A stretch of DNA of 64,000 nt from Octopus sinensis (Eukaryota). The DNA is taken from positions 12,523,360 to 12,587,359 of the forward strand of contig NC_043019.1 in assembly GCF_006345805.1 (NCBI RefSeq), in the 5' to 3' direction. Of the stretch, positions 21,619 through 53,000 are shown in pieces (the stretch's first letter is position 1; each line of letters begins with the position of its first letter). Under the pieces are notes generated by a model. It did no database searches and was not told where the DNA came from. It saw only the letters and a list, made by a program, of their open reading frames with translations. The translations under genes and the position numbers were made by a program.

Positions 21619-21738
21619 ACTCATGATTAGGGTTTGCAATTATTAAAATTTTAAAATTAAAAATTGGAATGAATCGATATTGTCAAAAAGACCAATACAC
21701 AGACTTCCGGTTTCCTGGTAAACAGACACCACAAAAAT

Positions 21739-22190
21739 GTTTCCATAACAACTTGAAAACTGAAAAGCCCAGGCCCAGAGTGCACACTGCCTGGATTACT
21801 GATATGCCACCGTCAGCTTCAGCTCTCTATGATGTCAAGTGAATAGGTCACACCCTTGATTTTTAGTGAAAGTTTTGGTAAAAAAAATTTGTTTCCATAA
21901 CAACTTGAAAACTGAAAAGCCCAGGCCAGGGTGCACGCTGCCTGGACTACTGATATGCCACCTTCAGCTTCAGATCTCTATGATGTCAAGTGAATAGGTC
22001 ACACCCTTGATTTTTATTGAAATTTTTGGTAAAAAAAATTTGTTTCTGTAACAACTTGAAAACTGAAAAGCCCAGGCCCAAGGTGCACGCTGCCTGGACT
22101 ACTGATATGCCACCGTCAGCTTCAGATCCCTATGATGTCAAGTGAATAGGTCACACCCCTGATTTTTTATCAAAATTTTTGGTAAAAAAA
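21739..22190. repeat. Tandem repeat, 3 x ~151 bp
   Basis: GTTTCCATAACAACTTGAAAACTGAAAAGCCCAGG units start at 21739, 21891 and 22042. Confidence 0.9.
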
Positions 22191-25301: not shown

Positions 25302-25540
25302 AAGCAACAAGTATATCTTAGGTAATTTGGTACGATTGTTTCATGCTACTTCATTTTATTAAACATTGTAAGTATTACATCAGTTTTAAAATGTCGAGCA
25401 ATCTTCAGCCATTTATAGAAGTCTTATAAATGGCTGAAGATTGCTCAACATTTTAAAACTGATGTAATACTTACAGTGTTTAATAAAATGAAGTAGCATG
25501 AAACAATCGTACCAAATTACCTAAGATATACTTGTTGCTT
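25302..25540. mobile_element. Near-perfect palindrome (~116-bp arms), Penelope-like inverted terminal fragment
   Basis: AAGCAACAAGTATATC...ATTTATA-gaagtct-TATAAAT...GATATACTTGTTGCTT; each arm carries a hammerhead-like motif. Confidence 0.75.
25431..25514 (+). ncRNA. Candidate minimal type-I hammerhead ribozyme (mirror copy 25328-25411 on -)
   Basis: TGG-CTGAAGA-TTGCT...AGCAT-GAAA-C-AATC-GTA-CCA; core boxes in order, short stem I, U-U at the stem II base. Confidence 0.55.
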
Positions 25541-26406: not shown

Positions 26407-28313
26407 TGTTTCCCCTGAGCTTGCAAGGGGAAACAGATATAGGATGAAGATCATCTACATCATCAGTGTATGAGTAAATAAGTAAACACACACACACACA
26501 CACACTCATAATATAATATTACAATGGATGTGAGGATGTGCAGTAAGAAATTTACTTCACAACCCCATGGTTCCAGGTTCAGTGCCATTGCACAGCACCT
26601 TGAGTATATATATATATATGCGGGTGGCACGTAAAAGCACCCGCTACACTCACGGAGTGGTTGGCATTAGGAAGGGCATCCAGCCGTAGAAACACTGCCA
26701 GATCAGACTGGGCCTGATGCAGCCTTCTGGCTTCACAGACCCCAGTTGAACCGTCCAACCCATGCTAGCATGGAAAGCGGACGCTAAATGATGATGATGA
26801 TATATATGTATGAATGTATGTGTGTGTGTATATGTTTGTGTGTCTGTGTTTGTCCCCCCCAACATTGCTTGACAACCGATACTGGTATGTTTATGTCCTC
26901 CGTAACGTAGCGGTTCAGCAAAAGAGACCGATAGAATAAGTACTAGGCTTGATTTACTCAACTAAAGGTGGTGCTCCAGCATGGTCACAGTCAAATGACT
27001 GAAACAAATAAAAGAGTAAAAAATGAGGGTTCAGTAAAACAAAGCGTTAAATCATGTTCTATGGGTACAAATGTGTGTCTTGAGACCCGCTGGTGCCTTG
27101 CAAATCTTTTGGCAAAGGGAACAAATTGAGGACTCAGTTTGCTCAAGTGCTTGTGGATCATTTACTATGTGCTTTCTTGAGAGGATGGCAAACTCTGATA
27201 CAAAACCAGGTTTGTGGTTGTTGACGGCCCCTTAGCTGGTGTGCACTATCAGTATATACTTACTCATAGGGCAGTCTGGGCCTTGTAGCTTTTGAGCAAC
27301 TAGACTAGGAGAAGGCCATTCTGATCTCAAATCTGCGATTGATTTAGCATCTGATACGTGACACACTGTGCACCAGTACAGGTAAGTGCTCCTGTATATA
27401 TATGTGTGGAGGTGTGTGTGTATAGATACAGACACACAAACATACATATACATAAGGTGGAAGGTGGTTGTTTTAATGTAAAAGTTGCTGCAGGAGTGGC
27501 TGTGTGGTAAGAAGCTTGCTTCCCAACCACATGGTTCTGGGTTCAGTCCCACTACATGGCACCTTGGGCAAGTGTCTTCTACTATAGCCTCAGGCTGACC
27601 AAAGCCTTGTGAGTGGATTTGGTAGGCGGAAACTGAAAGAAGCCCCTCATATGTGTATGTATGTGTATGTTAGTTATTTGTGTTTGTGTTTGTACCCCCA
27701 CCACTGCTTGACAACCGATGTTGGTGTATTTATGTCCCTGTCACTTAGCGGTTTAGTAAAAGAAATCGATAGAATAAGTACTAGGCTTACAAAGAATAAG
27801 CCTGGGGTTGATTTGTTCGACTAAAGGTGGTGCTCCAGCATGGCTGCAGTGAAATGATTGAAACAAGCAAAAGAATAAAAAGATTAAGTCTAATGTAAAT
27901 GGTACATATCAAGATGTGTGTGTGTGTGTGTGTGTATGTGTGCAGGGATGTAGTTATAGGTTGTATTTGTGTGCTCAGAGCTTAAGGTATTCTAAGAGTA
28001 TTCCTGATGGAAGGGGAGGGTGTTGCTCCTGCTGACATTGAGCATGGTGCTGTTGCTAAAGATATCACTGTCAATGACAGGTCTGTGATGAGAATTCAAC
28101 TGCTGTCATCAGTCAGCCCACAATGGGTAAGTACTAAGCAAAACCAGCTGTCGGATTGTGCCCCCCCCCCTCTTCCAGTTTCCCATTTTCATGATATACA
28201 TTAGTTAACCCTACAAGTGTAGCTTACTGATACCACCTACACTAAAAAATTAAGGTACTGAGTACTCTTTCTACCAATAGTCAACGCTAAACAGACATAT
28301 ATATATATATATT

Positions 28314-28712
28314 ATATACGAGAAAGAAGCAACAAGAATGGATTAGTTTTTAGTACAATTGTTTCATACAAAGACAGGCTTTATTACAAGTTGCAAAAAT
28401 TGCAGCAGATAAAAGTGTCCCGTACTCATCAGCTAAAATACATATGAGTTCTCTAGACATCTTAGTGGGTGAGGTTATACTCATGAAATATTGGAGATAA
28501 TTCCATTAAAGGCAGATATAGGTTGTAAACAGTTTTCCAAAGTTCCTTAATGATGATGCACAGTCTTATCACAGATTTTTAAAAAACTTATTAGTTTCAA
28601 AGAGAAGATGAATTATCTGCTGCAATTTTTGCAACTTGTAATAAAGCCTGTCTTTGTATGAAACAATTGTACTAAAAACTAATCCATTCTTGTTGCTTCT
28701 TTCTCGTTTATA
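28314..28712. mobile_element. Inverted repeat (~100-bp arms, ~200-bp spacer), Penelope-like
   Basis: 28314-28412 mirrors 28613-28712; shares AAGCAACAAG with the 25.3-kb palindrome. Confidence 0.75.
28348..28438 (-). ncRNA. Minimal type-I hammerhead ribozyme, apparently intact
   Basis: TTTTAG-CTGATGA-GTACGGGACA...TGTCTTTGTAT-GAAA-CAATTG-TA-CTAAAA: 6-bp stem I, intact core, palindromic stem III ACAATTGT, GUA cleavage triplet. Confidence 0.75.
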
Positions 28713-30169
28713 ATCACCCCACATTACTGTATGGTTAACACCATATAGTTTTTCTGGTGCATCTAAGTTAAGTACCACATTCAAGTAAATTCATTGGAAT
28801 TTACTTGAATCTTAATTGCTTTGATTATATATATATATATATATCATCATCACCATTTAATGTCTGCTTTCCATGCTGGCATGGGTTGGACAGTTTGAGT
28901 GAGGATTGGCAAGCCAGGAGGCTGCACCAGGCTCCAATCTTATCTACCAAGGTTTCTACATCTGATTGTCCTTCCTAATGCCAACCACTCTGAGAGTGTC
29001 ATAGCTGCTTTTTACATGCCGCTGGCATGGGGTTCCAATCAGGTGGTACTGGCATCGAATGGTGCTTTTTACGTGCAACTAGCATACACATATATATGTC
29101 TATATATGTACAGGTATGTGTGTGTGGGTGTGTTAATGTATCTGTCTATCCTTCCATCCATCCATTCTTCCTTTCTTCCTTGCCATTTCCACAATGGGGA
29201 ATTCCGTCAACACTTTTCAATCCAATAACATCAAGTGTAAAAGTTACACATCTCTGATGATTTGACATTATGTAACTAATGATGATCTTATCCGTTACCT
29301 GTTACTTGTTTCAATCAAAGGATTGTGACCATGCTGGGGCACTGCCTTATGTTAATGAAATGAGCCAAAGACGATTTAATTTAATATAGTTTAGAAAATC
29401 TTGTGTTTTGTTTTCTACACAAATAAATGTACATATACAGTTATATGCAAAGATGCACAATTTACACATATGCGTGTGTGCGTGTATATGTGTGTGTATA
29501 CATATTTGCAAAAATGAATAGAAATGGCTATTCTGATAATTTTCCCACTTTAATGATTAGATGTTTTATAAGCTTACAAAACGTGACTTTGATGGGAGTT
29601 TTTCACTTAAAGGCAGTTTTCATACCAATATCTTTAAGAGTTTGTTAGTCACTGTTTAAATAGTGAGTGTTGAATTACAAACATACATACATACATACAA
29701 ATACTAACAAGCACCTATACACATATATTTACATACACACACACACACTTGCATGCTGAGGCATGCTAGATCTATACACTGGAATCTCTCGTCTTATAAA
29801 AGTGATCATCTAAGTTCTAATGCAAAGGGAGTTTAGAATTCGCTTCCCCTTTCACAGTTGGAACCTGTCCACTTACCCTAGAGAAAGAAAGGCATATACA
29901 CCACAACATTCCTCTTAACTTAGCCCTCAATCCATTATTTTTTTTTTTACTAGTTTCATTCATGGACTGTGACCATGCTGAGCACTTTAGTGCATGCATG
30001 ACAGTACACATTTTTATGCTCACAGGGAGCCTCTGCACAGTTTCTGCGGCACGATCAATACTCAAAATTGATCGGGCCATGACTTGCCCCAGTGGCTGTG
30101 CACAACATTGGCATCAAGTATGGTACCACTCGGTTATAAATTGGTCTTCTCAGCTACGACATCCCACCC

Positions 30170-31107
30170 CCCAGCCGGCCCTTTTTTCCCCCATGTAAGG
30201 AACTCCGGCGGGCATTGCATATTGACACCATTCCCTGCGTTCTTCTTCCCCCAGTTTGTGTAGGAGAAAATATTACTAATTCTATAAATCTAACTGATGC
30301 ACTAGCATCACGCCACACAAATTCTACCCCCCACCCCACATCACTTCCACCGTTGCCACCACCACCACCACCGCCGCCACCACCATTTTGTATCATCACC
30401 TTCATTTATCTTGAATGGATGGATATTTCTGCTTTATGTGTTGTGATGTGATGCGGAAAATCCAGCCTCCTCCTCCTCTGCCTAAATCTCATCCATCTCT
30501 CACTCTTCCCCCCCCCTCTCTCTCCCCCTTCATTCTCAGTGTCAAATATACGGAAACGAAATGTCATTAGAAATCTTGCATACTGTGTGATACACTATAC
30601 ACACACATACACATGCAAATACATGCAAATAGACACACATACATACACAAATGCACAAAAGCAAGTTAGCTTGTTTATACACTCATACATCAACTTATGC
30701 ATGCATACACATTTGTGTGCATGTATGTATGTGTTGTGTGTGTGTGTGTGAGGTTAACAAGATTTTGTTAGTTCCACCTTATAACTACCGAAGTATGGCT
30801 ATGTTGTATACCTCAGCATACAAGTAATACCAACAACACCAACAACAACTAAAACAACATTTTTTTTTACTTGACAAAACTTAATATTGAAAGATGAATT
30901 TGATAAACATAGAATTAGTCACCATCACACACACACACACACACACAAATCCTCATTTATTCTGATAAAAATTCATCATACAAAACTATACACATATATA
31001 CATTACATATTCATGCATAAAGACACGTAAACAAATACAAATTCACAACTGCATACATACATGCATACACTCAATATGCACATATGCATACAATCAAGAT
31101 GCACACA

Positions 31108-31154
<47 letters not shown>

Positions 31155-31435
31155 CATGTATATATACCAAGAGCCACTTTGCAATGAAAACACTACAAGC
31201 ACACATGGACCTACAAATAAATATATGTGTGTGTGCATGCATGTGTGTATATATATATATATATGTGTGCGTGTGTGTGTGTGTATATATATATATGTGT
31301 GTGTGTGTGTGTAAGTGTATATGTGTGTGTGTGAATTTATATGTGTATATATATATGTGTGTGTGTGTATATATCTCTCTCTATGTATAATATATATTAT
31401 ATATATATATATATATATGTATCTCTATCATATAT

Positions 31436-31480
<45 letters not shown>

Positions 31481-32020
31481 GTATACATGCACACACACAG
31501 TATAACCTTTGCCGGACACAGATGGCCAGTGTGTATAATCTTGTCTAAAGCAAAATACCAATAGTGACCACCACCGCAACCACCACCACTCCAACTAAAA
31601 TAAACGAGGAGAGAATATTAATGGAAGCTGGCCAGTTTCAGGTTTTTCTTTGTCATAGAAACAGTTAATTTTTATCAACTTTTCCAAAGATAATCACGTC
31701 TTTTCATCGCAGCATCATAAGGCCATCATTGAAGAAGGTCGGCAAGAGGACGTAATTAAGTGCATGAACACCATCAATACACACAGACACACACACACAC
31801 ACACCATATACATATATGCAAACATATACAGACATACATGTACACACACACACATGTACACATACACACATGTATAATATATAAAACATTACAACATCTT
31901 GTATACTATTCTGAGCCATTGCAGAAACCTCTGTATGGTTGCTTTAATTGCTAGAGGCAACAGCCAAGTATGCCTCGAATCACACTCTACTGTCAAAGAA
32001 AGTGAAGATGGTCATGACTG
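30170..32020. repeat. Left arm (inner part) of ancient inverted duplication
   Basis: Collinear reverse-complement blocks with 38150-40920; see findings. Confidence 0.9.
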
Positions 32021-32168
32021 GAAGAAACAATAACATTGCATGTATGCACATGGTTCCGGGTTCAGTCCCACTGCGTGGCACCTTGGGCAAGTGTCTTCTA
32101 CTATAGCCTCGGGCCGACCAAAGCCTTGTGAGTGGATTTGGTAGACGGAAACTGAAAGAAGCCCATCG

Positions 32169-32212
<44 letters not shown>

Positions 32213-32479
32213 CGTGTATGTCTGTGTGTCTGTGTTTGTCTCCCTAGCATTGCTTGACAACCGATGCTGGTGTGTTTATGTCTCTGTTACTTAGCGGCTC
32301 AGCAAAAGAGACCGATAGAATAAGTACTGGGCTTACAAAGAATAAGTCCCAGGGTCGAGTTGCACAACTTAAGGCGGTGCTCCAGCATGGCCACAGTCAA
32401 ATGACTGAAACAAGTAAAAGAGATAAAGAGACACATGTATGCACACAAACACACACACTCTCTTTCAAATGCCCCTTTC

Positions 32480-32890
32480 TTCCATGCTTGCAATGGTCAG
32501 ACAGTTTATTGGGTCGGATTCTCTGTAGTTGGAAGTGGTTTATCTGGTATTTGTTGGGGGTAATCATCTAGGGATCGGTTGAATGCTGTGAAGTCACTTT
32601 CCCCCTTTATGTGTGCCTGGCACGATGTTGAAGAGAGCAGGGCCAATTGAGGTGAAATAGTTCTATCATAGTGTTTTGATACGACATGAACATTTCTATA
32701 GTGGATGGATGGCAGGGGGCAAAGCCTCGGACGAATTTTAAAGATCGGCAATGTTGATGTAATATTTTCCACATCATACAGATGATATAGAGCTCACAGC
32801 AGTGGTGGAGGGAGCAGAGCCTGAGCTTTTTGAGTCGATCCCAATAGTCAAGGCTTGTCATGTCATCCTTCGCAGACCTCTGCCAAGCAG
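32480..32890 (-). mobile_element. CR1/L2-type LINE RT C-terminal fragment (frameshifted)
   Basis: LDYWDRLKKLRLCSL...YIICMMWKIL and FNRSLDDYPQQIPDKP match the typical Y.ERL..L.LYSL...W / FK..LD.YL..VPDQP pattern. Confidence 0.8.
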
Positions 32891-33054
32891 CTCATTTTAA
32901 GATAGATACGCGAGTAAAATTACTAATAGAGAAACGAAAATAAACTTTGGAAACAGCAACGCCACCATAGGTTACATGGAAACGATGAATGTGTTTTCAA
33001 GGGAGATAATCAAAGAACGTAACATTGTAATACTTCATGTAAAGTAAATATATC

Positions 33055-33262
33055 AAATGAAAAATCCTGCAAGAATCCATAAAAATTCCTGGATCACTAC
33101 CAAAATGTCATCATCTGTTCCTTGTGTCTTTACTAATTTTTCCTGCATGTTTCATCAAATACCCTTCATAACTTTTGGAGTTATTCTGCACACAGACAGA
33201 CAGATGGACAAACCACCGCTGATGAAAATATAACCTCTTTTCTCTGGTGGAGGTAATTAAGA
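33055..33262 (+). mobile_element. Helentron-associated (HINE-like) element end
   Basis: CATAACTTTTGGAGTTATTCTGCACACAGACAGACAG...GAAAATATAACCTC-n-GGAGGTAATT terminal hairpin; the same end appears reversed at ~62577-62685. Confidence 0.5.
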
Positions 33263-33309
33263 AAGGAAGAAGGAAAGCTTGTGTATCACCTTAACTGTGT
33301 ACATAATAT

Positions 33310-33356
<47 letters not shown>

Positions 33357-33554
33357 TATTATCAGTAAAGTACCAAGGAAAAAGCAAACAATTAGTCAAG
33401 GCAGGACAAGGACGTTTGATTTTATTTATTCAATCTAAAAATTTAGCTACAAACGAACGGTAAAAATAGCACAAACTAGTTATGTTAGTCTATACAGCTG
33501 TTTATATATGTGTATGTGTTTTGTGTATACACACGTGTGTACATACATACATAC

Positions 33555-33606
<52 letters not shown>

Positions 33607-34154
33607 GTATATATTAGGTAGAGGGAAAATCAAAATTCAGACAGAACGAGTATTTCAAGTCATTGAGCATAATTTAGTTAGGGTAATTTGGTGAATTTGA
33701 AGTCTTACAGCTGTTTCTGGGATAACCCAAGTGGTAGGTTAGCTTGTCCATTCACTGGGTATTCCGTCATCAGAGACAAAGTATGAATATTTTAGACAGG
33801 GAAAATTTACAGTTTACAAGAAATTAAATTCACAGTTTATAAAGAATAAAATAGAAGAATAAAGAGTAAAAGTTGTTAGAAGAACTATATTATTCTCCTG
33901 CCAATATTCTTCTATTTTACTCCTTTATTCTTCTATTTTATTCCTTATAAACTGTAAATTTTCCCTGTCTAAAATATTCATACCTTGTCTCTGATGGTGG
34001 AATACTCAGTGCATGGACATGCTAACCTACCACTTGGGTTATCCCAGAAACGGCTGTAAGACTTTAAATTCACCTTACCCTAACTAAATTATGCTCAATG
34101 ACTTGAGATACTTGTTCTGCCTTGGTTTTGATTTTCCCTCTAATCAATATATAC
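33607..34154. mobile_element. Fold-back (~240-bp arms) Penelope-like element with hammerhead motifs
   Basis: Arms 33607-~33870 and ~33915-34154; follows a (TA)n tract. Confidence 0.8.
33702..33777 (-). ncRNA. Minimal type-I hammerhead ribozyme (mirror copy 33987-34062 on + is degenerate)
   Basis: GTCT-CTGATGA-CGGAATACCCAGTG...CACTTGGGTTATCCCA-GAAA-CAGCTG-TA-AGAC; palindromic stem III ACAGCTGT; GUA triplet. Confidence 0.7.
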
Positions 34155-35838
34155 CTGCAATAATGGAACCCTAAAATGGATCCCTTGATCCCATCAGGGG
34201 ATTTTTAGGGGGCTGTACCTCTGAAAAACCTAAACCTTGTGTATAATACACACCCCTTCCCTAACTTGAGTCGTGAGTAATTAAGCCAGCAGCACCTAGT
34301 CGGACAAACACTTCCACGCATGCGTAATACAATAATGGTGATGTTCTTAACTGTTATATGGGAATGTAAATATGTTTGCAAATTGTTTTTGTTACATGTT
34401 ATTCTGTGTTCTGGATACTTTTATTTTAATAAATGTTGCTTACTGCAAGTTATGGATGATTCTTTTATGACTTCATAGCTTTCAGGCTTAGCTTAAGGTA
34501 TTTTCGCGCCCAACATCACAAAATGCGTCTGAATAAACATTGCTGGACAGCAAATAGAGACTCGGGCATTGCTTAGAAAATATTTTTCATTTTTAACCTT
34601 GTAGATAGTATGCACTAGGGATATTGACCTTTAAATTTTTAGAAAAAAATGCGGATTATACTCGAGGATTTATGGAACTTAAAGATATATATATATACGT
34701 TTAAATATTTGTTGTGCAAGATTTTTTATGTGAAGTCGTGTGTGTTGAAACAGATATTGTTATATTTCGGAATGGTCATATTGCCAGTTTAGCCAATAAA
34801 AACACACGCACTATATATTTGGTGTTATTTTGCTTCAGTGATATTTATTTTTTACATTAATCTAATGTAGCTTGCTAACCAACCACATGGTTGCGGGTTC
34901 AGTCCCACTGCGTGGCATCTTGGGCAAGTGTCTTCTGCTATAGCCCGGGCCGACAATGCCTTGTGAGTGGATTTGGTAGACGGAAACTGAAAGAAGCCTG
35001 TCGTATTATAGTATATATTATATATATTGTGTGTGTGTGTGTGTGTGTGTTTGTGTGTCTGTGTTTGTCCCCCCTAGCATTGCTTGACAACCGATGCTGG
35101 TGTGTCTACGTCCCCGCCACTTAGGGGTTGCAAAAGAGACCGATAGATAAGTACTGGGCTTACAAGAATAAGTTCCGGGGTCGATTTGATCGACTAAAGG
35201 CGGTGCTCCAGCATGGCCGCAGTCAAATGACTGAAACAAGTAAAAGAGTAAAAGAGAATATATATATATATATTATATAATCAATATTTGGCAGAAAAAA
35301 ACAGAGTGACTCGAGGTGTGAGAGTTTCATGTGTTAGCATTTATTGAACAGACTATTGACAAACCCATGTATATATATGTGTGTATGGTGCTATACTGTG
35401 CTGTGGTATGTAATATTGTGTAATTAATACATGCATCTATATATTTATTTGTCTTGTGTCCATCTGTTAATGTAATGTCATCACAATCTGCATTGTTGAT
35501 GACAATTAAAAAAAAAAGTATTACATTTTATCAGTTGTTCTATCAATGAAACTTTTGTTTGGTTGAAGAATTAACAAATGACAGGCACCAATCTCTTTCG
35601 TAGTAAACTCACATATGGAAACTAAATATGCACACGCTCATATGAATAAGAATATACTTAGTTATACACAGCCTGTGTACACACATTCACAGATGCTTGT
35701 ATATATACACACACATATATATATATGGTTATATGTAGACAACACATTTATAGAACGCTAATACATTGACATACAAACATCTATGTATGTATATGCATGT
35801 ATCTCTCTCTCTCTCTCTCTCTCTCTGTATATATATAT

Positions 35839-35880
<42 letters not shown>

Positions 35881-36049
35881 TATTTTTGTGTGTGTGTACA
35901 CACACTGAAATGAATAAAAGAATAAATGTGTATATATATATATTTTGTGTGTATATATGTGTATGTATGTGTGTGTGTATGTATATGTGTGTATGTATAT
36001 ATGTGTGTATATATATATGTGTATGTGTGTATATATATATATATGTGTG

Positions 36050-36101
<52 letters not shown>

Positions 36102-37590
36102 CGTGTGTATATATATGTGTGTGTATATATATATTGAGAGAGAGAAAGAAAGTGCTGTGGATTGCTTGAAGCATCATGGAATATATATAGAAAATCAGTC
36201 TGCTTCAGATGATAGCAAGGCTGAAAAAAAATGTTTAAATATCAAAAGCAACAATGAAACTAGGATACTGAAAATGTTAACATAGAAATATTTTAGTCCA
36301 GATATTTTTTTTTACAAAGCCTATAAAAAAAAAATAATTATGAGTGAGAGAGTGAGACAGATTAAATGTCTATATGTCCATTTTGTTGCCATATCAAATC
36401 TTTGTGTGATATTTGAATGACCATGTGTGTAAAAAGTGTAGGATTGTGTGTCACAGGCTGTCTATGTCTCTGGTTCCAATGACTTATTTACAAGAAGGAA
36501 TTGGGTCAAGTTTTGTGGTGCACAGTTGCTCTAAGGAGTGGTTATTTGTAGGAGTCATGATTGGTTGTCATTCAGTTAGTGAGTTTGGAACTTAACCTCA
36601 GTGGATTATTGCTTCTCTACTAAGGATAGAGACTAAATTCTCAGAAATCAACCAAGGGTTTTACTGGGATGACGACTTTAAAAATTCATTGTATAATCCC
36701 CAAACTGGTTTGCTACAAATTAAAATCATATTTCCTTTATATCATGTGTCAGACATTAACCATTTCGTTTGACTCTTTTACGATATTGACTTAATCTAGT
36801 TGTGATTAATACTTGACTTGTCACTAAAGAAGTGAAACAAAACCAATACCTGTGTTTTTATTGGCAGAATGTCTCTCCTAAAATACATTTGTTTTTAACA
36901 TACTCACACACACATATATATGAGCATATTTATGTATATAGATCCACACACACTCACATTTGATATGAACTTGTACATGTGTGTGTATGAATATATATAT
37001 ATATATCATCATCATCATCATCATCGTTTAGCGTCCGTTTTCCATGCTAGCATGGGTTATATATATATATGGTGTGTGTGTGTGTGTGTGTGTGTTTGTA
37101 TGTATGTATGTGTGAGTGTATATACCAGAGTAAGAACATAAATGTGAAACAAGGTGGGAAAAAGAGTACTCATCATCATTTAATGTCAATTTTGCATGTT
37201 GGCATAGGTTGGACAGCTTGACAGGAACTGGCATGACCAGAGCCTGAACCAGGTTTCATAGTCTGTGCTGGCTTGGTTTCTACAGCTGGATGCCCTTCCT
37301 AATGCTAACCACTTTGCAGAATGTATTGGCTGCTTTTTACATGACACTATCACCAGTGCTTTTTACATGGTACCATCAACAGTGCTTCTTGCATGGCACC
37401 ATGACCAGTGCTTCTTATGTAAAACCAGCACCAACACTGGTGCTTTTTATAGGACACTTTGTTTTTAGGATATCATTGCTTTTGTGGTGGGCAGTTCTTC
37501 TTGAGTATAGCAGTGTGCCACATATCTCGGTCCTCTGTCATCTCCTTTGTAAGGCTCAGCGTTTTGAGCTCACCCTTCATATACACATGC

Positions 37591-38345
37591 ACTCATGCTC
37601 ATACACACACACACACACACAAACACAATCTTATTAATCCAGATCAGTTCTCACTGAGTAAACCAGACCTGTGATCAAAGGCATTCTAGCCATGACCGTC
37701 CACACTTTTTTTTTTCTAAAGAACAAAGTATGATCTGAGGGCAATTTAGCTGATTTGGCTGTTGTTTCTAGGAGGTCAAGCAACCATGCAGAGGCTCCAT
37801 CATTGGCTCATTTTAGCATACAATGTACTATAGTGTTCTACACACACACTCATGCTCTCACACACACAAACACAATCTTATTAATCCAGATCAGTTCTCA
37901 CTGAGTAAACCAGACCTGTGATCAAAGGCATTCTAGCCATGACCGTCCACACTTTTTTTTTTCTAAAGAACAAAGTATGATCTGAGGGCAATTTAGCTGA
38001 TTTGGCTGTTGTGTTCTAGAGGTCAAGCAACCCATGCAGAGGCTCCATCATTGGCTCATTTTAGCATACAATGTACTATAGTTTCTACACACACACACTC
38101 ATGCTCTCTCACACACACACACAACACAATCTTATTAATCCAATCAGTTTCTCACTGAGTAACCAGACCTGTGATCAAAGGCATTCTAGCCATGACCGTC
38201 CACACTTTTTTTTCTAAAGAATAAAGTATGATCTGTGGGCAATTTAGCTGATTTGGCTGTTGTTTCTAGGAGGTCAAGCAACCATGCAGAGGCTCCATCA
38301 TTGGCTCATTTTAGCACACAATGTCCTATAGTGTTCTACACACAC
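37591..38345. repeat. Tandem triplication, ~250-bp unit containing a SINE fragment
   Basis: ACTCATGCTC units start at 37591, 37848 and 38097; copies differ partly by scattered single-base indels. Confidence 0.9.
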
Positions 38346-38939
38346 ACACACACACATATACAGACATTCTATATATATATATCTGGTTTTGATACACTTG
38401 TTAACTCTGTCCTTTTGCTGGCCTTCTTAAACAAACTACGTACTTGTGATGCTGTAATGAAAAGATGTGATTATCTTTGGAAAAGTTGATAAAAATTAAC
38501 TGTTTCTATGACGAAGAAAAACCTGAAACTGGCCAGCTTCCATTAATATTCTCTCCTCATTTATTTTGGTTGAGTGGCATTGGTGGTGGTGGTGGCGAGG
38601 AGTGGGGGTCATTATTTGGTAGTTTGCTTTATGCAAGATTATGCACACTGGCTGCCTGTGTTTGTCTGGCAGAGCTTATGCTACAATTGTGTGTGTTTTA
38701 TATGTATATATATATGTGTATATGTATGTATATATATATATATATATAATATATAATATATATATATATATATACATACATATACACATATATATATACA
38801 TACATACATGTATACATACATATATACATACATACACACACACATATATATATAGATATATACATACATAAATACACACATACACACACATATATATATA
38901 CACACATATGCATACATATATACACATATGCATACATAT

Positions 38940-38970
<31 letters not shown>

Positions 38971-39429
38971 TATTTATATATATACACACATATACATACG
39001 TATATATATATATACACATATACATACATATATATATACACATACATATATAATATATACATATATAAGTGTTTGTATCTCTCTCTGCATTACAAAGTAG
39101 CTAGTTGTGTATGTGTATATATAATATATATATATATATATATAATATATATATATATATATCATCATTTAACGTCCGCTTTCCATATATATATATGTGT
39201 GTGTATGTGTAATGTGCATGTTTTGTGTGAATTTGTATTTGTATCTTTAAGCATGTATGTATGCTTGTATATAGTTTTTTTGATTTCTTTTTTTTTTTCA
39301 GAATATGTGATGGTTGTCTATGTCTATTATCTCTGTTTATCTCCTTTAATATTAAGCTTTATTGGGTAAAAAAATATGTTCTAATTTCTGTTTATGCTTG
39401 TTATACATACTTTCATGCTTGTTATATAT

Positions 39430-39466
<37 letters not shown>

Positions 39467-39790
39467 GCATATATATATATGTGTGCATATATATATATGC
39501 ATATGTGCATATATATATATGCATATGTGCATATATATATATATGTGCATATATATATATATATATATGCATATATATATATATATACATAGTGTATATA
39601 TATATGTGTTTGCATATGTGTATATATATATATGTGTATGCATATGTGTATATATATATATGTGTATGCATATGTGTATATATATATGTGTTTGCATATG
39701 TGTGTATATATATGTGTGTGTGTATTTATGTATGTATATATTTATATATATATATGTGTGTGTATGTATGTATATATGTATGAATACATG

Positions 39791-39830
<40 letters not shown>

Positions 39831-40171
39831 TGAGATATACACTATAACACATGCATCAGTATCTATAAAGAAATTAACCTGCACACAAGCATATACATAC
39901 ATACACACATGCATGCACACACATGTGGGTCTGCATCTATTACTTGTACATGTGTTTCAGTACACTATCTCAAATGCATACATGTATGCGTGTATTTATA
40001 TATGTTTTATGTCACACATTTACAATATGAAAGAATTTTAATGATGTTTCCATATGTTCAGCATTGAGAATCAGGAAGAGGATAGACAGATAGATAGACA
40101 GACACAAAGATAGAGCAATAGATAGATAGACTGCTAGAGCAATAAATAGACAGATATATATATATATATAA

Positions 40172-40240
<69 letters not shown>

Positions 40241-40920
40241 TATATATATATATATTATATAGAAATAGAGAGAGAGAGAGAGAGAGAAAACGAGAGAGAT
40301 AATATAGATAGAGATATAGAGAGAGAACGAGAGAGAGAGAGATAGACGGATAGAGAAATGGATAGATAGATAGGTAGACAGGCAGATAGATAGATAGATA
40401 TAGAGATGGATGGATGGCTAGAGAGATGGATAGAGAGATAGGTAGATGGTGGATGGATAGATATGTAGATGGATGGATGGATAGATAGAGGGATGGATAG
40501 ATAGGTAGATGGATGGATGGATAGATAGAGGGATGGATAGAGAGATGGTTAGATGGATAGCTAGCTAGCTAGATAGATAGATAGAGTGATAGGTAGAGAG
40601 AGAGCAGGTAGAGGAAGGTGGTGTTGGATTTTCCATATCATATCACAATGCATAAAGCAGAAATATTCAACCATTCATGATAAATGAAGATGAGGATATA
40701 TACCGAGGAGGGGGTGTTGTTGCTGGCAGCAATACTTGTGGTGGTGGTGGTGGTGGTGGCAGTAGTGGAGGTGGTGGGTGAGTGAGTGTTGATATTTAAA
40801 TTAGATTTATGGAACTGGGAATATTTTGCTTTATCTAAATTGATGGAAGAATGCAGGGAATGGTGTCAGTATGCAATGGCCATGGGAATTTGTTATGTGG
40901 TGACATGGGCCTGGCTGGGA
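38150..40920. repeat. Right arm (inner part) of ancient inverted duplication, expanded by microsatellites
   Basis: Reverse complement of blocks in 30170-32020, separated by long (TA/TG/TAGA)n tracts. Confidence 0.9.
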
Positions 40921-43089
40921 TTAAAAAGTTCACATAAGCAAGTATGCCTGTGTGGTAAGAAGTTTGCTTCCCAACCATATGGTTCTGGGTTCAGTCCCAC
41001 TGGGTGGCACCTTGAGCAAGTGTCTTCTACTATAGCCATGGGTTGACCAAAGCCTTGTGAGTGGATTTGGTAGATGGAAACTGAAAGAAGCCCATAGTAT
41101 ATATACATATATATATATATATATATACTTTTGATACATATTTAAAATAATATAAATTAATTAATTTTATGTATTGGCTTATGTTTTTCATTGTCTGATT
41201 TGCCTAATAGTGGTTTTATCTCTAATTTAATATAATATAATATATTTATACTATAAAATTGGATTCAATCCTAAATCTGATTTTCCCCTGTAAGTTTGGA
41301 TTTATTCCCTAATATTTTATTATATATATATATATATACACATACATACACTGTTACACCCATGGAAAACAGATGTTAAATGATGATGATGGTGATTGGT
41401 GTTGATGCCATGTAAAAAGCACTCGACACACTCTGTAAAGTGGTTGGTGTTAGGATGGGCATCCAGCTGCAGAAATCAAGCCAAAACAAACTATGGAACC
41501 TGGCGTGACCCTTGGCCTTGCCAGTTCCTATCAAACTGTCCAACCCATGCCAGCATGGAAAAACTGACCTTAAATGATGATGATGATGATGATGACACAT
41601 ACAAACACACCCAAATGTGTATATGTGTGTGCGTGTATATATTCATATATATATACTCTCGGAGTGGTTGGCGTTAGGAAGGGCATCCAGCTGTAGAAAC
41701 ACTGCCAGATCTGACTGGCCTGGTGCAGCCTTCGGGCTCCCCAGACCCCAGTTGAACCGTCCAACCCATGCTAGCATGGAAAGCAGACGTTAAACGATGA
41801 TGATGATGATATCAGCCGAAATTGCGAGGATAATCTGGTGTTTGACTGAGGAAAGAAAGCTTCGAATGACGTGTCCTTGTTTTCTTTGTATCGTCTATCT
41901 GGATGTTTTGTTGTCCCATTTTTGTATCACCTAGCTGCCCGGATATTTTGCGTTCTTGTCCCATTTTGTATTTTATACACACACACACACACACACATAT
42001 ATATAAACACGCAAATGTACATTAATTCCTATGTGCTTATGTATGTACCTACATATATATATGTGTGTGTTTGTGTGTACAGACACATGTATAAGCACAA
42101 TCACACACACACATGCACACACAATATTTCTTTGTAATGTTGCACTAGGCTAGCAATTTTAGAGGTGAGGACAAGACAATTACGTCAACTCCAGTGCTCA
42201 GCTTATACTTATGTTATTGACCCTGAAAGGATGTTATCGAACCTGAAAGGATAAAAGGCATAGTTGGCCTCGGTGGAATTTGAACTCACTGTTTAATGAA
42301 TCAGAATAAATACCACAAAGCATTTTTTTTTGTGTATGATACTCTAATGATTCTGCCGGCTCACTGCCCTCCACACATGCAGAGTATTAAACGATATATC
42401 AGTTTAGCATGGGTTACAAGCTAACCTGTACCCCACCTCTACATACATAATATACGTACCTATATCCAATGACAAAAAGAAAGGATCAAATCTCTCTCCC
42501 TCTCTTCACAATGACAGAGCTATTTATTAGACCAAGGAATAGAGGTGTGTTTGCTATTCTTTCTAAACAGGTTAACTCACGAAACCTATTGTTAATCACA
42601 ACAGGGGCATTTTCTCTGTAATTATTTTCTATTTTATGTCAGGTGTAAATATGGCTGTGTGTATAGACACAGGTGTGGTTTCTCGACCACGTCGTTCCAT
42701 GTTCAGTCCCACTGCGTGGCACCTTGGGCGAGAGTCTTCTACTATAACCTTAGGCCAATCAAAGCTTTGTGAGTGAATTCTGTAGATGGAAACTGAAAGA
42801 AACCCATTGTATATCGAAACGTGGAGTAGATAAAACAGGGGACAACTGATAAAGGGAATGTTCTTTATGTTGCATGTCTCGTTTCTCTGTTTTTTTCTCG
42901 TTGTTTGAAAAAAAGGTTCATTTTCTATGTTTTTGTTTTTATGTTTTCGTTTCTCATTGTGTCCCTGAAAGTTTTTAAGGGCATCCGGCTATAGAAAATC
43001 TGTGTCACTGAATTCCATCCAACCTAGGCAAGTGTGGAAAAGTGCACAATAAAACGGTGGTCCTTCATCATCAGTGACTTGGATTTTTT

Positions 43090-43745
43090 TATTTAAGGGC
43101 CCTTAAGTAGGGGAAATGAGTAGTGATTGTGTTTGTGTATGGGAGGAGGGATGGTAGTGGTGGTAGGTTTGTGTGTGGTGAAAAGTTTGTTGGTGGGATA
43201 GGGTTTACGTTGGCAGTAGTAGTGATGGTGGTAGAAATGATGGTGTGGTGGTGGGGATGGCAGTTATGATGGTGTTGGTGATGGTAGTTGTGATGGTGGT
43301 AGTGGTAGTAATGATGTTGTTGTTGGTGGTGGTGATGGTAGTTATGGTGGTGGTGGTGGTGATAGCAGTTATGATGGTGGTAGTGGTAGGGATGGTAATG
43401 ATGGTTGTGGTGGTTATGATGATGATAGTGGTGGTGATGGTAGTTATGATGGTGATGGTGGTAGTGGTAGTAATGATGTTGTTGTTGGTGGTGGTGATGG
43501 TAGTTATGGTGGTGGTGGTGATAGCAGTTGTGATGGTGGTAGTGGTAGGGATGGTAATGATGGTTGTGGTGGTTATGATGGCAATGATGATAGTGGTGGT
43601 GATGGTAGTTATGGTGATGGAAGATAGGTGGCAAGAGTGGGGGATGAATATTAGACAGTAAGAAAGATGTCAACAGGGAGCTCAGGAGGAGTAGGGGAGA
43701 TATTTGCAGGTAGATGATGGTGGTGGTGGTGGTAATTGTGGTAGA
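43090..43745. repeat. Cryptic (GGT/GAT)n trinucleotide tract
   Basis: Low complexity; source of the His-rich and Val/Met-rich ORFs. Confidence 0.9.
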
Positions 43746-44039
43746 GGTGTTTGATCCTTAGGGGTAGGGTTTAGTAGCATCAGGTATGGTTGAGTACATT
43801 GAGGTGATCTTTCACTGGTGTGGGGACCAACAGAGGTCTTGTGTTTAAGAATGAAATAATTAACACCATAAAGAGGAAAGGTGTTGTAGTAGGAGTGGAG
43901 GTGTTGATCGAGAGGGAGAGAGATGTCATAAGGGGCTGGAGTTGGGGTTGGGACCCTTGCTCACTTTTGACCTCCCTGTCTAACAAATTTGGGAACTTGA
44001 CCCTGCTACTAAATTTTAATTGTAGACCTGCTAAATTTT

Positions 44040-44630
44040 CTGCAACCAGCACAGCCACAACTACCATCACCACTACCAACACCACCACCAATACCACTGA
44101 CATCACCACCACCACTGACACTTCCACCAGCACCACCATCAACACCACCAGTCACCATCACCATTGACACCACTACCACCACCACCACAACTACCACCAC
44201 CACAATAACAACACTACACAGCAGCAGCATTACATTGCTGTCATTAACACTGCACCATCATGCTACCACCTCTACACTATCACCAACACCACTCCACCAC
44301 TGTTGCCAGTACCATCACATCATACCCAGCAGTTACCACTGCCACTACATCACCACCAGTATCACTACCTCCACCACCTCCACCATTGACAGACCACACC
44401 TGGCATCACTACTATGACCACCTCCTTTGCTACTACTGCAACACTGCTGCCACACCCAACACTACACTATCACCATCACCACCACCAGTATCACCCTACT
44501 ATAGGTGTTGTTGGTACCACTAGTACTATTAATAATGATTAGATAATCTAGTAGAATTCCTAGAAACTTTTGCTACCACCAAAACCCACCATCACCACCC
44601 CACCACCACCACTACCAATACTACTAGTAT
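44040..44630. repeat. Cryptic (ACC/ACT)n trinucleotide tract
   Basis: Low complexity. Confidence 0.9.
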
Positions 44631-44709
44631 TACGCCCCAAACTACTTCTAATACTATTGCATTTAACATTTATTTTTACCTCCCTCACCAACTGTTACAA
44701 GGGAGCCTC

Positions 44710-44970
44710 TATGTGGTCACTTAATTTGCTAGAAATCTTACCAGACCTCAGCCCCTTTGAGTTCTTTTTCTGGGGTCTGCTAAAGGAGAAAGTGTACTCA
44801 ATGAAAATCACAGATGCAGCACACTTGATGGAATGCATAAAGAGCGAATGTGCTCAAATTGAGGCCAGTGTGCAATTATTGCATTGAGTTCTCATAAATC
44901 TTGCGAAGTGCATTGACCTCTGCATCACAAATGGTAGAAACCATATTGAAGATGTTGTTTGTTATTAGCA
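44710..44970 (+). mobile_element. Tc1/mariner-superfamily transposase C-terminal fossil
   Basis: PDLSPFEFFFWGLLKEKVY...IDLCITNGRNHIE matches the SPDL.P.DFFLWG.LK.KVY...CI...G.H.E motif; contains an in-frame stop. Confidence 0.85.
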
Positions 44971-49090: not shown

Positions 49091-49190
49091 NNNNNNNNNN
49101 NNNNNNNNNNNNNNNNNNNNNNNNNNNNNNNNNNNNNNNNNNNNNNNNNNNNNNNNNNNNNNNNNNNNNNNNNNNNNNNNNNNNNNNNNN
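49091..49190. other. Assembly gap (100 N)
   Basis: N run truncating a family A SINE. Confidence 1.
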
Positions 49191-49254: not shown

Positions 49255-50112
49255 ATGTCACCGCGTTTTTGCCATCATCATTACTATCGCTTTGTCGTCA
49301 TCATAATCATCATCTTCGTCATTTTCACTGTTATCATCATCATTATCATTGTTGTTGTCGCCATCATTGTCATCTTCTTCATTGACATCATCATCATCAT
49401 CGGTCATCTTCATTGTCATTATCATCATCATCGTTATCATCGTCATTGTCATTATCTTCATCGTCGTCATCATCGTTGTCGTCATCATTATCTTCATCGT
49501 CATCGTTATCATCTTCATCATTGTCGTCATCATCGTTGTCGTCATCGTCGTCATCATCGTCATCGTCATCATCATTGTCATCGTCATCATCATCATCATC
49601 ATCTTGAACACCAATAGCACCACTATCTTTCTCACTGCCGCTGTCGCCCTCACCACCCTCACTGCAACCACTACCTCCACCATCATGAAGACCAATACTG
49701 CCACTCTCATCCTTACTGCCACTATCGCCATCTCTACCACTACCACCACCATATCTACCATCATCATCATCTGTACACCTATGCTACCACTACCATCGAA
49801 CAACTACCACCTCTGCCAATATCATCATCACAATCATCATCATCACCAACAGTAATGTAATTACTGCTATGGCTACTATCACAGACATCAATAATCCTAC
49901 CACCGCTACTGTCACCACCACCACCACCACCACCATCATCATCATAAGCATTAATATCACCACCACTATGATCACTATTGTAAACATTAATGCCACCACA
50001 CCACCAACACTACCTTTATTGTCATCATCATCACAAACACTAATACTACCACAACCACCCACACTACCACCACCACCACAACCACCACAATCACCACAAC
50101 CATCATCATCAT
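49255..50112. repeat. Cryptic (ATC/GTC/ACC)n tract
   Basis: Low complexity; source of the poly-I, poly-S and poly-H ORFs. Confidence 0.9.
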
Positions 50113-50629
50113 ACCTTCAGTACAGGAAAAACAAGTCAGATAAAAATAAAAGAAAAGATCCAATCTTGAAGAAACAATCTTGTCACATCGCAATTTGCAA
50201 TTCCAGACTGCATTAATTAGACACGTGAGTGATGTGAGTGATGCGACAGACGTGTCGGTCAACCAGGAAACAAAGTTACACTGTCCTCCTGTGGAGAGCA
50301 GAATTATATCTTTTGTTTTAAATGTAGGTTGTTGTTGTTGTTATTGTTGTTTAACTCTGAGTCTGAACTGATCCAGCAGACCTCTGATCAAAAAAAAAAA
50401 AAAAACCCAAAAAAAACACGTCCTCATTGAATGTTCTGTGAAGGTTCATTTCGCAACCACATTCCTAAGCTTGCAACCCATTTCGGCACCATTGGCTTGT
50501 CTCTGGACTATGTCATTAGGGTGGAGGAGGTTTATGAGATGTTGCACAAGCCCTATTAGACCTAAAAATTTTGCACAGTGATGGTCATACTTCTGTAGGA
50601 GTTGACTAACATCATTAATGTGTAAAATG

Positions 50630-51601: not shown

Positions 51602-51734
51602 TATGATGCGTCATATGTGTCTGAAAATGGGGAACTTTCTACAAAAACTGGCAAAGTGAAACGCAGGTTTCGAGAATTCTGCACGCTACAACAGAAACTT
51701 GAAGAAAGGAACGTCTATAAGAAATGCTTGAAAG
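51602..51734 (+). CDS. SNX19: Internal coding exon, PX domain of a sorting nexin (SNX19-like)
   Basis: Acceptor TTTTTTTATTTGTCTTTACAG|, donor AAAG|GTAAAT; 133 nt, phase 0 to phase 1; YDASYVSENGELSTKTGKVKRRFREFCTLQQKLEERNVYKKCLK resembles SNX19 YETA...VNRRYREFLNLQTRLEEK..RKFIK as recalled. SNX13/14/25 cannot be fully excluded. Confidence 0.75.
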
Positions 51735-53000
51735 GTAAATACTTACGTTTACATTATAAGATATTGATTTTAGCAACTTCAAAAGATAACAAATAAACCG
51801 TTTTTAACTCTGGAACTCAAAGTACACAAAGCATTTGATACTATCACGCAAAAAGATAAAAGACTTAGAAGATCAATAAACCCTGTTGACCCCAACCTGC
51901 TCATCACTGTCCTAGATTCTCTGATACGAACTTCTTTAAAAAAGGGGTCAAAATTAAAACCTTTCATCAAAATTTCCTGCTAATTTTTCTTCCAAATCCC
52001 AGCTTAATAATCAATCTTTTATCTTTTACTTGTTACAGTCGTCAGACTGCGGCCATGCTGGGGCACGTCTTGAAGAATTTTTAGCCGAGGGGTTTGACCC
52101 CAGTACTTCTTATTTTTTAAGCCTGGTACTTATTCTATCAGTCTCTATTACTGAACTGCTAAGTTACAGGCATGTAAACACACCAACATCAGCTGTCAAG
52201 TGGTGGTGGTGGTGGTGGTGGGGCACACATACACACATAGATATACATACATACATATACAATACATACATACATACATATACCATATATACATACATAT
52301 ACAATACAATACATACATACATACTATATGTGTGTGTGTAAGGTGACTAAGTACAGAAAAAATGCTCTCATATATCTGTCAGCAGAATGAGTATATACAT
52401 CGAAGTGTACAGTATTATATACCCATTACAGCTGATTATATCAATCAGTTTTGCACAAGGGGTTTAACAGTCATCATATTTCATTCCATAATGGCCATCT
52501 CCGATGAGCATAGGATTACATAACTGAGCCGCTAGTGTGAAAGTAGTTGGTAAGATCAGCAATAATGGATATATAATACTGTACGCTTTGATTAATATAT
52601 ATATATATATATTAATCAAGGAGTGGCTGTGTGGTAAGTAGCTTGCTTACGAACCACATGGTTCCAGGTTCAGTCCCACTGCGTGGCACCTTGGGCAAGT
52701 GTCTTCTACTATAGCCTCAGACCGACCAAAGCCTTGTGAGTGGATTTGGTAGATGGAAACTGAAAGAAGCCCGTCTTATATATGTCTATATATGTGTTTG
52801 TGTGTCTCTGTTTGTCCCCCACCAACATCATTTGACAACCGATGCTGGGGTGTTTACGTCTCCATAACTTAGTGGTTTGGCAAAAGAGATGGATAGAATA
52901 AGTACTAGGCTTACAAAGAATAAGCCCTGGGGTCGATTTGCTTGACTGAAGGCGGTGCGCCAGCATGGCCATAGTCAAACGACTGAAACATGTAAAAGAG

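Follow-up and report, generated by a model that had tools for sequence, protein, structure and literature searches.

Two 102-nt segments that lie 6.7 kb apart in inverted orientation within one long intron of Octopus sinensis form an island of near-identity inside otherwise diverged arms, and their agreement is well past chance expectation. The cause of this island is likeliest either local gene conversion or constraint on the sequence, and no sign of a selected RNA duplex was found. In the window, which is the whole 64-kb stretch of DNA that was analysed, the two cores and the blocks surrounding them are placed as follows:

31606-31707, plus strand: left 102-nt core, identical at 100 of 102 positions to the reverse complement of 38457-38558.
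38457-38558, minus strand: right 102-nt core, the inverted copy, delimited by alignment to the left core.
31484-31775, plus strand: left arm of block B, which contains the core and aligns to the reverse complement of 38385-38696.
38385-38696, minus strand: right arm of block B, delimited by alignment to its left arm.
30165-30470, plus strand: left arm of block A, the outer block, 78% identical over ungapped columns to the reverse complement of 40610-40935.
40610-40935, minus strand: right arm of block A, which stops at a SINE insertion (40942-41127).
31881-32023, plus strand: left arm of block C, the inner block, which stops at a SINE insertion (32047-32431).
38184-38339, minus strand: right arm of block C, part of a 247-nt unit that is repeated three times (37611-38347).

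Direct alignment of the cores is free of indels and reproduces what the sequence-only reading had reported, namely a 102-nt core with two differences and neighbouring blocks that are far more diverged: the flanks continue at about 77% identity with indels, and block B without the core shows 76.9% identity and 28 gap columns. The probability of finding at most two mismatches in 102 columns at a divergence of 23% is 1.3e-9 (binomial), and when the columns of block B were shuffled 20,000 times the longest run with at most two non-matches averaged 31 columns with a maximum of 68, compared with the 102 observed. In the 20-column bins adjoining the core 12 of 20 columns match on each side, so that there is no gradient of identity and the borders are sharp. 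The core has a GC content of 32% and its flanks of 43-47%. The two mismatches are located at 31651 (T vs C) and 31698 (G vs A), in contexts that contain a CpG in one of the two copies (CTTCGTC/CTTTGTC and CACGTC/CACATC, read off the printed core sequences), and both are transitions of the kind left by CpG decay. That an assembly or polishing artefact homogenised both cores is hardly credible. Nothing specific speaks for it, the window containing one 100-N gap (49091-49190) which is 10 kb away; two sites still distinguish the copies, and reads are not expected to cross-map on the strength of a 102-nt match when the flanks are 76% identical and rich in indels.

The cores belong to an inverted duplication that is old and local, spans at least 1.9 kb and consists of the three colinear blocks A, B and C in mirror order. 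Outside the core all blocks together show 453 matches in 594 columns (76%), 53 transversions and 90 gap columns, corresponding to an arm-to-arm divergence (K2P) of about 0.29; the local alignment of block C scores 99 compared with a shuffle maximum of 43. The ends of the arms, where target-site duplications would lie, are obscured by SINE insertions, and no homology was found past the SINEs that bound them. Between the arms lie SINEs, a small foldback, microsatellites and a putative LINE-tail remnant, the latter recognised by eye and giving no Pfam match. A transposase gene between the arms and further copies, which would be expected of a transposon with long terminal inverted repeats or of a foldback element, are both lacking in the window. 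Microsatellites occur at matching positions in both arms. The tandem arrays of 247 nt and 151 nt in the same intron show 94% identity, and the intron also holds a 102-nt inverted repeat at 99%.

The second of these arrays bears on the question whether the cores belong to a dispersed element:

21738-22190, minus strand: tandem array of three 151-nt copies, with a weak similarity of the unit to core positions 22-92 (nhmmer).

This array scores 12.9 and 10.5 bits against the core (E = 0.0055 and 0.03), while 21 decoys reach at most 7.2 bits, and its core-like segment of about 70 nt, located 10 kb upstream, is about 70% identical and has unrelated flanks. The cores might accordingly be fairly recent insertions from two diverged subfamilies of a moderately repeated transposable element with a conserved core, in which case the flanks would differ because the subfamilies do, rather than through age. 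SINE superfamilies with a central domain (CORE, V, Deu, Ceph, Nin-DC, Meta) likewise share a module of about 70-100 nt between differing flanks, the array may represent a third copy, remote and in a different setting, the window is packed with interspersed repeats, and some elements carry microsatellites such as those found in both arms. We nevertheless regard this explanation as rather unlikely. Blocks A, B and C occur just twice each in the 64-kb window, colinear over at least 1.9 kb and in mirror order at a distance of 6 kb, as is better explained by a local duplication than by a transposable element; neither the arms nor the sequence between them showed coding capacity, ARAGORN detects no tRNA-like head in 30000-41200, and the 76 kb of Argonauta hians sequence that were compared contain no copy. 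From the SINE superfamilies the pair differs in lacking a Pol III head, in forming two close copies within 64 kb with one distant core-like segment, and in being colinear over about 2 kb.

The strand and the intronic position of both arms are given by a single exon:

51602-51736, plus strand: PX-domain exon of the SNX19-like host gene, with tttgtctttacag as acceptor immediately before it and gtaaat as donor immediately after it.

This exon matches the Pfam PX family (E = 0.011), and its ten PDB matches are without exception PX domains, with KIAA0254, which we take to be SNX19, ranking first (E = 0.08). It is 98% identical to residues 799-842 of XP_014784879.2 from O. bimaculoides and identical to O. 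sinensis LOC115223689; protein-database searches with the exon gave no match. The tblastn queries comprised XP_014784879.2, an older version of it with 1283 aa and eight further proteins, and by these gene models of related species, rather than by RNA, 51602-51736 is the sole SNX19-like exon in the window. The exon before it does not occur in the first 51.6 kb, and with the O. bimaculoides isoforms as queries neither the stretch between the arms nor their vicinity yields an exon of this gene. On the basis of these models both arms appear to lie well inside a single intron, longer than 51 kb, which is the first long one of a plus-strand SNX19-like gene. The canonical PX exon bears out the earlier assignment of the plus strand as the sense strand, whereas the proposed steering of splicing or back-splicing finds no support: with both arms in the same intron and no exon between them, back-splicing or exon skipping has no target. 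Inverted pairs of the Alu type promote the formation of circular RNA when they flank exons, with the arms in different introns, which is not the arrangement found here.

Short-tract gene conversion between the arms of the old inverted duplication, with pairing of the cores as a by-product, is the explanation that we tentatively prefer, at somewhat less than even probability. The inverted duplication would have arisen in the first long intron of the SNX19-like gene and would later have undergone microsatellite expansion and SINE insertion. Much later, a single short-tract non-allelic conversion, in which a break in one arm was repaired from the other arm, 6.7 kb off, as template, would have re-equalised the 102-nt patch, and afterwards each copy would have lost one of its two CpGs through deamination. 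A patch of this kind, free of indels and set in inverted paralogues in cis with far more diverged flanks, resembles the non-allelic conversion tracts found by GENECONV-type tests and in palindromes with arm-to-arm exchange, and the sharpness of both borders is as one event predicts. The length of the tract, about 100 nt, is in keeping with short-tract conversion, and nearby inverted repeats, such as palindrome arms and segmental duplications, are its standard substrates. Other recent local copying is observed in the same intron, comprising the 247-nt and 151-nt arrays and the 102-nt inverted repeat. Against conversion stands that it is strongly suppressed between sequences diverged by about 23%, here because the flanks are without long identical seeds, and the arms are far more diverged (76% identity) than typical conversion substrates. 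Moreover, the core is AT-richer than its flanks, the opposite of what GC-biased conversion leaves; GC enrichment of conversion tracts is frequent but not obligatory.

The main rival to gene conversion, which we consider somewhat unlikely, is purifying selection on the primary sequence, the core being a non-coding element specific to the Octopus lineage that is needed base for base in both copies, e.g., an intronic enhancer or silencer duplicated together with the segment. The sharp borders suit this explanation as well, and so does the AT-richness of the core, which does not suit GC-biased conversion, as do the recurrence of a related segment in the 151-nt array and the lack of any indel or non-CpG change within the core in comparison with the divergence of its flanks. 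Both differences affect CpG nucleotides, of which the core has four, and the other 98 nucleotides are unchanged. With the CpG to non-CpG rate ratio of 3.3 estimated on local SINEs, the probability of this outcome under neutral decay after conversion is about 0.014, and it rises to about 0.08 at a ratio of 10, giving a post-hoc hint of constraint on the remaining core that counts against conversion. Discrete non-coding elements that stand well above neutral flanks and occur twice near one gene are also known as duplicated conserved non-coding elements (CNEs) or shadow enhancers. Duplicated vertebrate CNEs are typically 70-85% alike between paralogues, and for selection alone to keep paralogues 100% identical at all non-CpG sites would be unusual. 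A precedent for the class exists in cephalopods, in which CNEs of at least 100 bp and at least 95% identity number 1187 common to squid and octopus and 42920 among squids (PMC9023564). Such conservation between orthologues is not seen for the core in Argonauta hians, the one species compared: in its orthologous gene with 10-kb flanks the core is absent, the best nhmmer match reaching 8 bits (E = 0.23), which is the level of decoys. This comparison covered 76 kb including the 37.6-kb orthologous intron and was the sole cross-species test; the absence speaks for conversion and against selection, and a position well inside an intron, surrounded by SINEs and microsatellites, is likewise unfavourable to selection.

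Searches for a function in the core were negative throughout, which favours conversion. No open frame runs through the core, with stops in all six frames, and the GT and AG candidates at its borders differ between the copies as read from the alignment; a coding exon was rejected on these grounds. Protein-database searches with open reading frames across the core and exact ORF look-ups returned nothing. A recursive splice site was considered for a CAG|GTTTTT in the core and rejected, its polypyrimidine tract and donor being poor and the other arm having no equivalent by eye. Rfam gives no match over either core at E <= 1; in 24-46 kb all Rfam matches are sub-threshold and most fall in microsatellite tracts, the strongest lying in the palindrome 25302-25540. 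The core shows no significant fold of its own (z-scores of -0.02 to -0.97). The sequence-only reading had offered gene conversion and a TAAT-rich conserved enhancer as alternatives; both conversion and a conserved element stay as the two leading explanations, while the TAAT-richness is accounted for by base composition, with four sites compared with 2.5 expected from shuffles (P = 0.24). ATTAAT, TTAATT and AGATAA, the latter a GATA-type motif, are not significant against shuffles either. Exact-pattern scans of JGI metagenomes, IMG/VR and GTDB genomes with the core returned only three chance bacterial 20-mers, none of which extends, and substrings of the core were not found in published paper texts.

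Since both arms lie in the same intron, the pre-mRNA can form a 102-bp duplex in which two of the pairs are G-U, as had been proposed from the sequence, and the computed energy of this duplex is -171 kcal/mol on plus-strand RNA compared with -163 on the minus strand; the minus-strand duplex is nearly as stable, which makes the strand difference marginal. With both arms transcribed in one intron, the cores probably pair, and the duplex may be edited by ADAR, in either case as a by-product and not as the cause of their identity. Inferred from gene models to be on one transcript and forming a long near-perfect duplex, the cores have two of the properties expected of an ADAR substrate, and across metazoans such substrates conventionally derive from inverted repeats close to each other, with O. 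bimaculoides among the species profiled (PMC9989829). The pair shares two inverted copies and a potential duplex of about 100 bp with intronic inverted pairs of the Alu type, which give rise to dsRNA and ADAR hyper-editing, but differs from them in not being a young high-copy repeat and in its 6.7-kb spacer within the same intron.

The earlier proposal went further, suggesting that selection acts on the long-range plus-strand duplex as such, because it recruits ADAR or serves intron processing, and that mutations which break pairing are purged. Besides the energies and the shared sense-strand intron it could draw on the two core differences, which do form G-U pairs in a plus-strand transcript and A-C in a minus-strand transcript, as claimed. 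Both being CpG transitions, however, they would fall on the plus strand by chance in one of four cases. The wider G-U bias across blocks was not upheld: G-U-type and other transitions number 51 and 37 outside the core (p = 0.17) and 53 and 37 over all aligned blocks including it (p = 0.11), whereas a narrower choice of block C gives 46 and 28 (p = 0.047). A strand-specific mutation bias as source of the excess was rejected, the arm bias itself not being significant and the background asymmetry weak, as shown by 42 SINE copies with 384 C>T plus A>G compared with 346 G>A plus T>C changes on the plus strand (ratio 1.11, p = 0.17). With 53 transversions and 90 gap columns outside the core, pairing as such is not preserved in the flanks; a single mismatch would cost a few of the 171 kcal, and selection on pairing could hardly hold every base. 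The lack of an exon between the arms also tells against a selected duplex, and better hairpins with short loops exist in the same intron, at 28311-28714 (99%) and 25302-25540 (96%). Selection for the duplex is for these reasons improbable. Less probable still is that the cores are a lineage-specific ultraconserved pair kept complementary for a functional 102-bp duplex in the SNX19-like pre-mRNA, which might serve, e.g., as a regulated ADAR-binding platform or loop out 6.7 kb of the very long intron to aid its processing.

As it stands the finding is of limited reach, an illustration of the ways in which patches of identical sequence come about or are retained within old duplicates in the introns of a repeat-rich cephalopod genome. 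It also indicates that a pair of sequences which looks designed for an RNA duplex needs controls for copy number and across species before claims on ADAR or splicing are made. If both copies were frozen across Octopus, the core would be a duplicated ultraconserved element, a rarity for a cephalopod, and would lend itself to assays of regulation or RNA structure.

The two cores, near-identical segments of 102 nt in inverted orientation, lie at 31606-31707 (plus strand) and 38457-38558 (minus strand). Alignment of the first with the reverse complement of the second gives 100 of 102 identical positions and zero indels, in full agreement with the sequence-only reading, and the two differences are located at 31651 (T vs. 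C) and 31698 (G vs. A). The more strongly diverged neighbourhood described in that reading was recovered as well, as the cores sit within a larger inverted duplication, whose halves are termed arms here and which comprises three colinear blocks:

30165-30470 versus 40935-40610, inverted: block A, defined by alignment
31484-31775 versus 38696-38385, inverted: block B, containing the core, 77% identical beyond it with 28 gap columns
31881-32023 versus about 38339-38184, inverted: block C, defined by alignment
37611-38347: 247-nt unit in three copies at 94% identity, in the right arm only and taking in right block C

At the divergence of the block B flanks, a 102-column stretch with at most two mismatches has a probability of 1.3e-9, and in 20,000 column shuffles of block B the longest run with at most two non-matches had a mean of 31 and a maximum of 68, against 102 observed. 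Identity drops abruptly and without gradient, with 12/20 matches in the 20-column bins adjoining the core on either side. The core-pair observation is real and statistically solid. Outside the core, the 594 ungapped columns are 76.3% identical and show 88 transitions and 53 transversions (90 gap columns; K2P 0.29). The blocks are spaced by microsatellites of unequal length in the two arms, which measure about 1.9 kb (left) and 2.7-3.3 kb (right) and are bounded by SINE insertions at 32047 (left) and 40942 (right). No homology was found past the left-arm SINE or, in 270 nt of unique sequence, past the right-arm SINE, and the window holds no extra copies of blocks A, B, and C. The 6-kb spacer contains two copies of the SINE-A and one of the SINE-B repeat family, a small foldback, microsatellites and a putative LINE-tail remnant; a transposase-like ORF was not found in it.

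The host gene is marked by a single exon:

51602-51736, plus strand: PX-domain exon of 135 nt with canonical acceptor and donor

Pfam recognized it as part of a PX domain (E = 0.011), 10/10 of its PDB matches are PX domains with KIAA0254, which we take to be SNX19, at the top, and an exhaustive HMMER search identified it as residues 799-842 of the O. bimaculoides PXA+PX protein XP_014784879.2; the Sepia pharaonis orthologue of the host gene bears the name SNX19. The plus strand is the sense direction of this SNX19-like gene, as had been read from the sequence. The exon matches O. sinensis LOC115223689 throughout, and one K/R residue separates it from O. bimaculoides. At this site (51716-51718) the window and O. 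sinensis carry the codon AAG (K) and the O. bimaculoides RefSeq has R, an A/G difference (AAG vs. AGG); K-to-R is a typical recoding type in cephalopods, and the comparison gives no evidence of more than a species difference. Further host-gene exons were not found in the 64 kb by tblastn with both O. bimaculoides versions and eight proteins from a representative search. In Argonauta hians the intron orthologous to the one upstream of the PX exon measures 37.6 kb and follows a giant first coding exon; the gene spans 105 kb in O. bimaculoides, 106 kb in O. sinensis and 244 kb in Sepia. Because tblastn revealed no other exon, both arms appear to lie deep inside a single intron longer than 51 kb, 13-20 kb ahead of the PX exon. 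Very probably they are co-transcribed in sense direction. On this gene model the arms have no exon between them that could be circularised or skipped, since tblastn shows none there, and the suggested steering of splicing or back-splicing is not supported.

The core was rejected as coding sequence (stops in 6/6 frames) and as an exon (candidate border GT and AG sites are not the same in the two copies). Rfam returned nothing for it at E <= 1, it does not fold significantly by itself, and a tRNA-like head was not found; the TAAT richness on which an enhancer had been proposed was not recovered, as neither TAAT nor related motifs exceed their frequency in shuffles. Pattern scans for the core in metagenome, viral and prokaryotic collections returned chance 20-mers only, and ORF-based protein searches and exact look-ups returned nothing. 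Core and blocks A-C are all absent from the 76-kb locus of Argonauta hians; what aligns there, beside the exon, is limited to SINE cores and low-complexity tracts, and intronic sequence is therefore saturated at this distance. Most of these non-exonic matches involve SINE cores and the following tracts, which also yield spurious His/Thr/Val-rich ORFs on both strands:

43089-44500 and 49255-50216: long low-complexity tracts of CAC/CAT/ACC type

Inside the window, one array is distantly similar to the core:

21738-22190: 151-nt tandem array, three copies at 94% identity, with minus-strand resemblance to the core

Using nhmmer, core positions 22-92 resemble the 151-nt unit weakly (12.9 and 10.5 bits, E = 0.0055 and 0.03; maximum of 21 decoys 7.2 bits), over about 70 nt at about 70% identity with unrelated flanks. 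Because of this resemblance the core module may be of repeat-family origin; that the two copies belong to a family of transposable elements sharing a conserved core is improbable. Further features of the window are:

2609-3067, minus strand: C2H2 zinc-finger ORF of 152 aa (Pfam zf-C2H2 and zf-C2H2_4), probably a transposable-element segment or a degenerated zinc-finger gene
2906-3294: 197-nt tandem duplication at 96% identity, overlapping this ORF
32509-32891, minus strand: putative LINE reverse-transcriptase ORF tail, recognized by eye (DYWDRLKKLRLCSL), no Pfam match
44564-44884, plus strand: putative mariner-type transposase C-terminal end, recognized by eye (LSPFEFFFWGLLKEKVY), no Pfam match
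49091-49190: assembly gap of 100 N directly behind a SINE copy

Non-allelic gene conversion classically leaves an island of identity within cis paralogues that have otherwise diverged, and for this reason it is tentatively preferred as the most likely cause of the core identity. However, a flank divergence of 23% makes conversion hard, the tract is AT-rich, and both core differences fall on the 4 CpG nucleotides and none on the other 98 (probability about 0.014 at the local CpG/non-CpG rate ratio of 3.3, rising to about 0.08 if the ratio is 10). All three speak for the main rival, in which purifying selection maintains a lineage-specific element in both copies. This rival remains rather unlikely, as the core is missing from Argonauta, carries no motif or other functional signal, and perfectly identical paralogous conserved non-coding elements (CNEs) are rare; for scale, only 1187 CNE candidates (at least 100 bp, at least 95% identity) are common to squid and octopus (PMC9023564). 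Window CpG observed/expected is 0.43 (TpG+CpA 1.33). In SINE copies the rate of change at CpG sites is about 3.3-fold that of the remaining sites, a pattern that germline methylation of the gene body could explain.

In plus-strand RNA both core differences are G-U pairs, as had been pointed out, but the wider G-U bias did not hold up: in all aligned blocks, transitions giving G-U on plus number 51 vs. 37 (p = 0.17) when the core is left out and 53 vs. 37 (p = 0.11) when it is counted. A narrower choice of block C gives 46 vs. 28 (p = 0.047), and the result therefore hangs on how the blocks are aligned. To control for strand-specific mutation, changes were counted in 42 SINE copies of the window, giving 384 plus-strand C>T+A>G vs. 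346 G>A+T>C (ratio 1.11, not significant), among which A>G vs. T>C (119 vs. 95) is a weak hint of transcription-linked asymmetry. Both core differences lie at CpG sites (inferred ancestral CTTCGTC and CACGTC), with one CpG lost per copy as C-to-T on the window plus strand, for which the chance of both falling on this strand is 1 in 4. The duplex energies are -171 kcal/mol (plus) and -163 kcal/mol (minus), and a single mismatch should therefore be almost invisible to selection for pairing. The transversions and indels in the flanks show that the arms have not kept their pairing as such. A selected RNA duplex received no positive support and is very improbable. Better short-loop hairpins than the core pair exist in the same intron:

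28311-28412 versus 28613-28714: inverted repeat, 99% over 102 nt, 200-nt spacer
25302-25540: perfect-type palindrome of 239 nt, 96% identity, adjoining a SINE-B copy
SINE-B pair at 94% identity, same intron
33607-34154: foldback or MITE-like element of ~550 nt, arms 89-92% complementary, 105-nt centre, no second copy in the window

The first pair has unrelated flanks and no sequence similarity to the core, and the palindrome gives the region's top miRNA-like Rfam scores, which are sub-threshold. The 28311-28412/28613-28714 pair is a young hairpin-forming duplication and makes a stronger candidate for dsRNA than the core pair. With such hairpins in the same intron, duplex-forming potential is commonplace there. 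The main target of metazoan A-to-I editing is repeat-formed dsRNA, whose conventional source is nearby inverted repeats, as profiled in species including O. bimaculoides (PMC9989829). For this reason, incidental pairing of the cores and their editing by ADAR would be plausible. The biology behind the core pair is ordinary.
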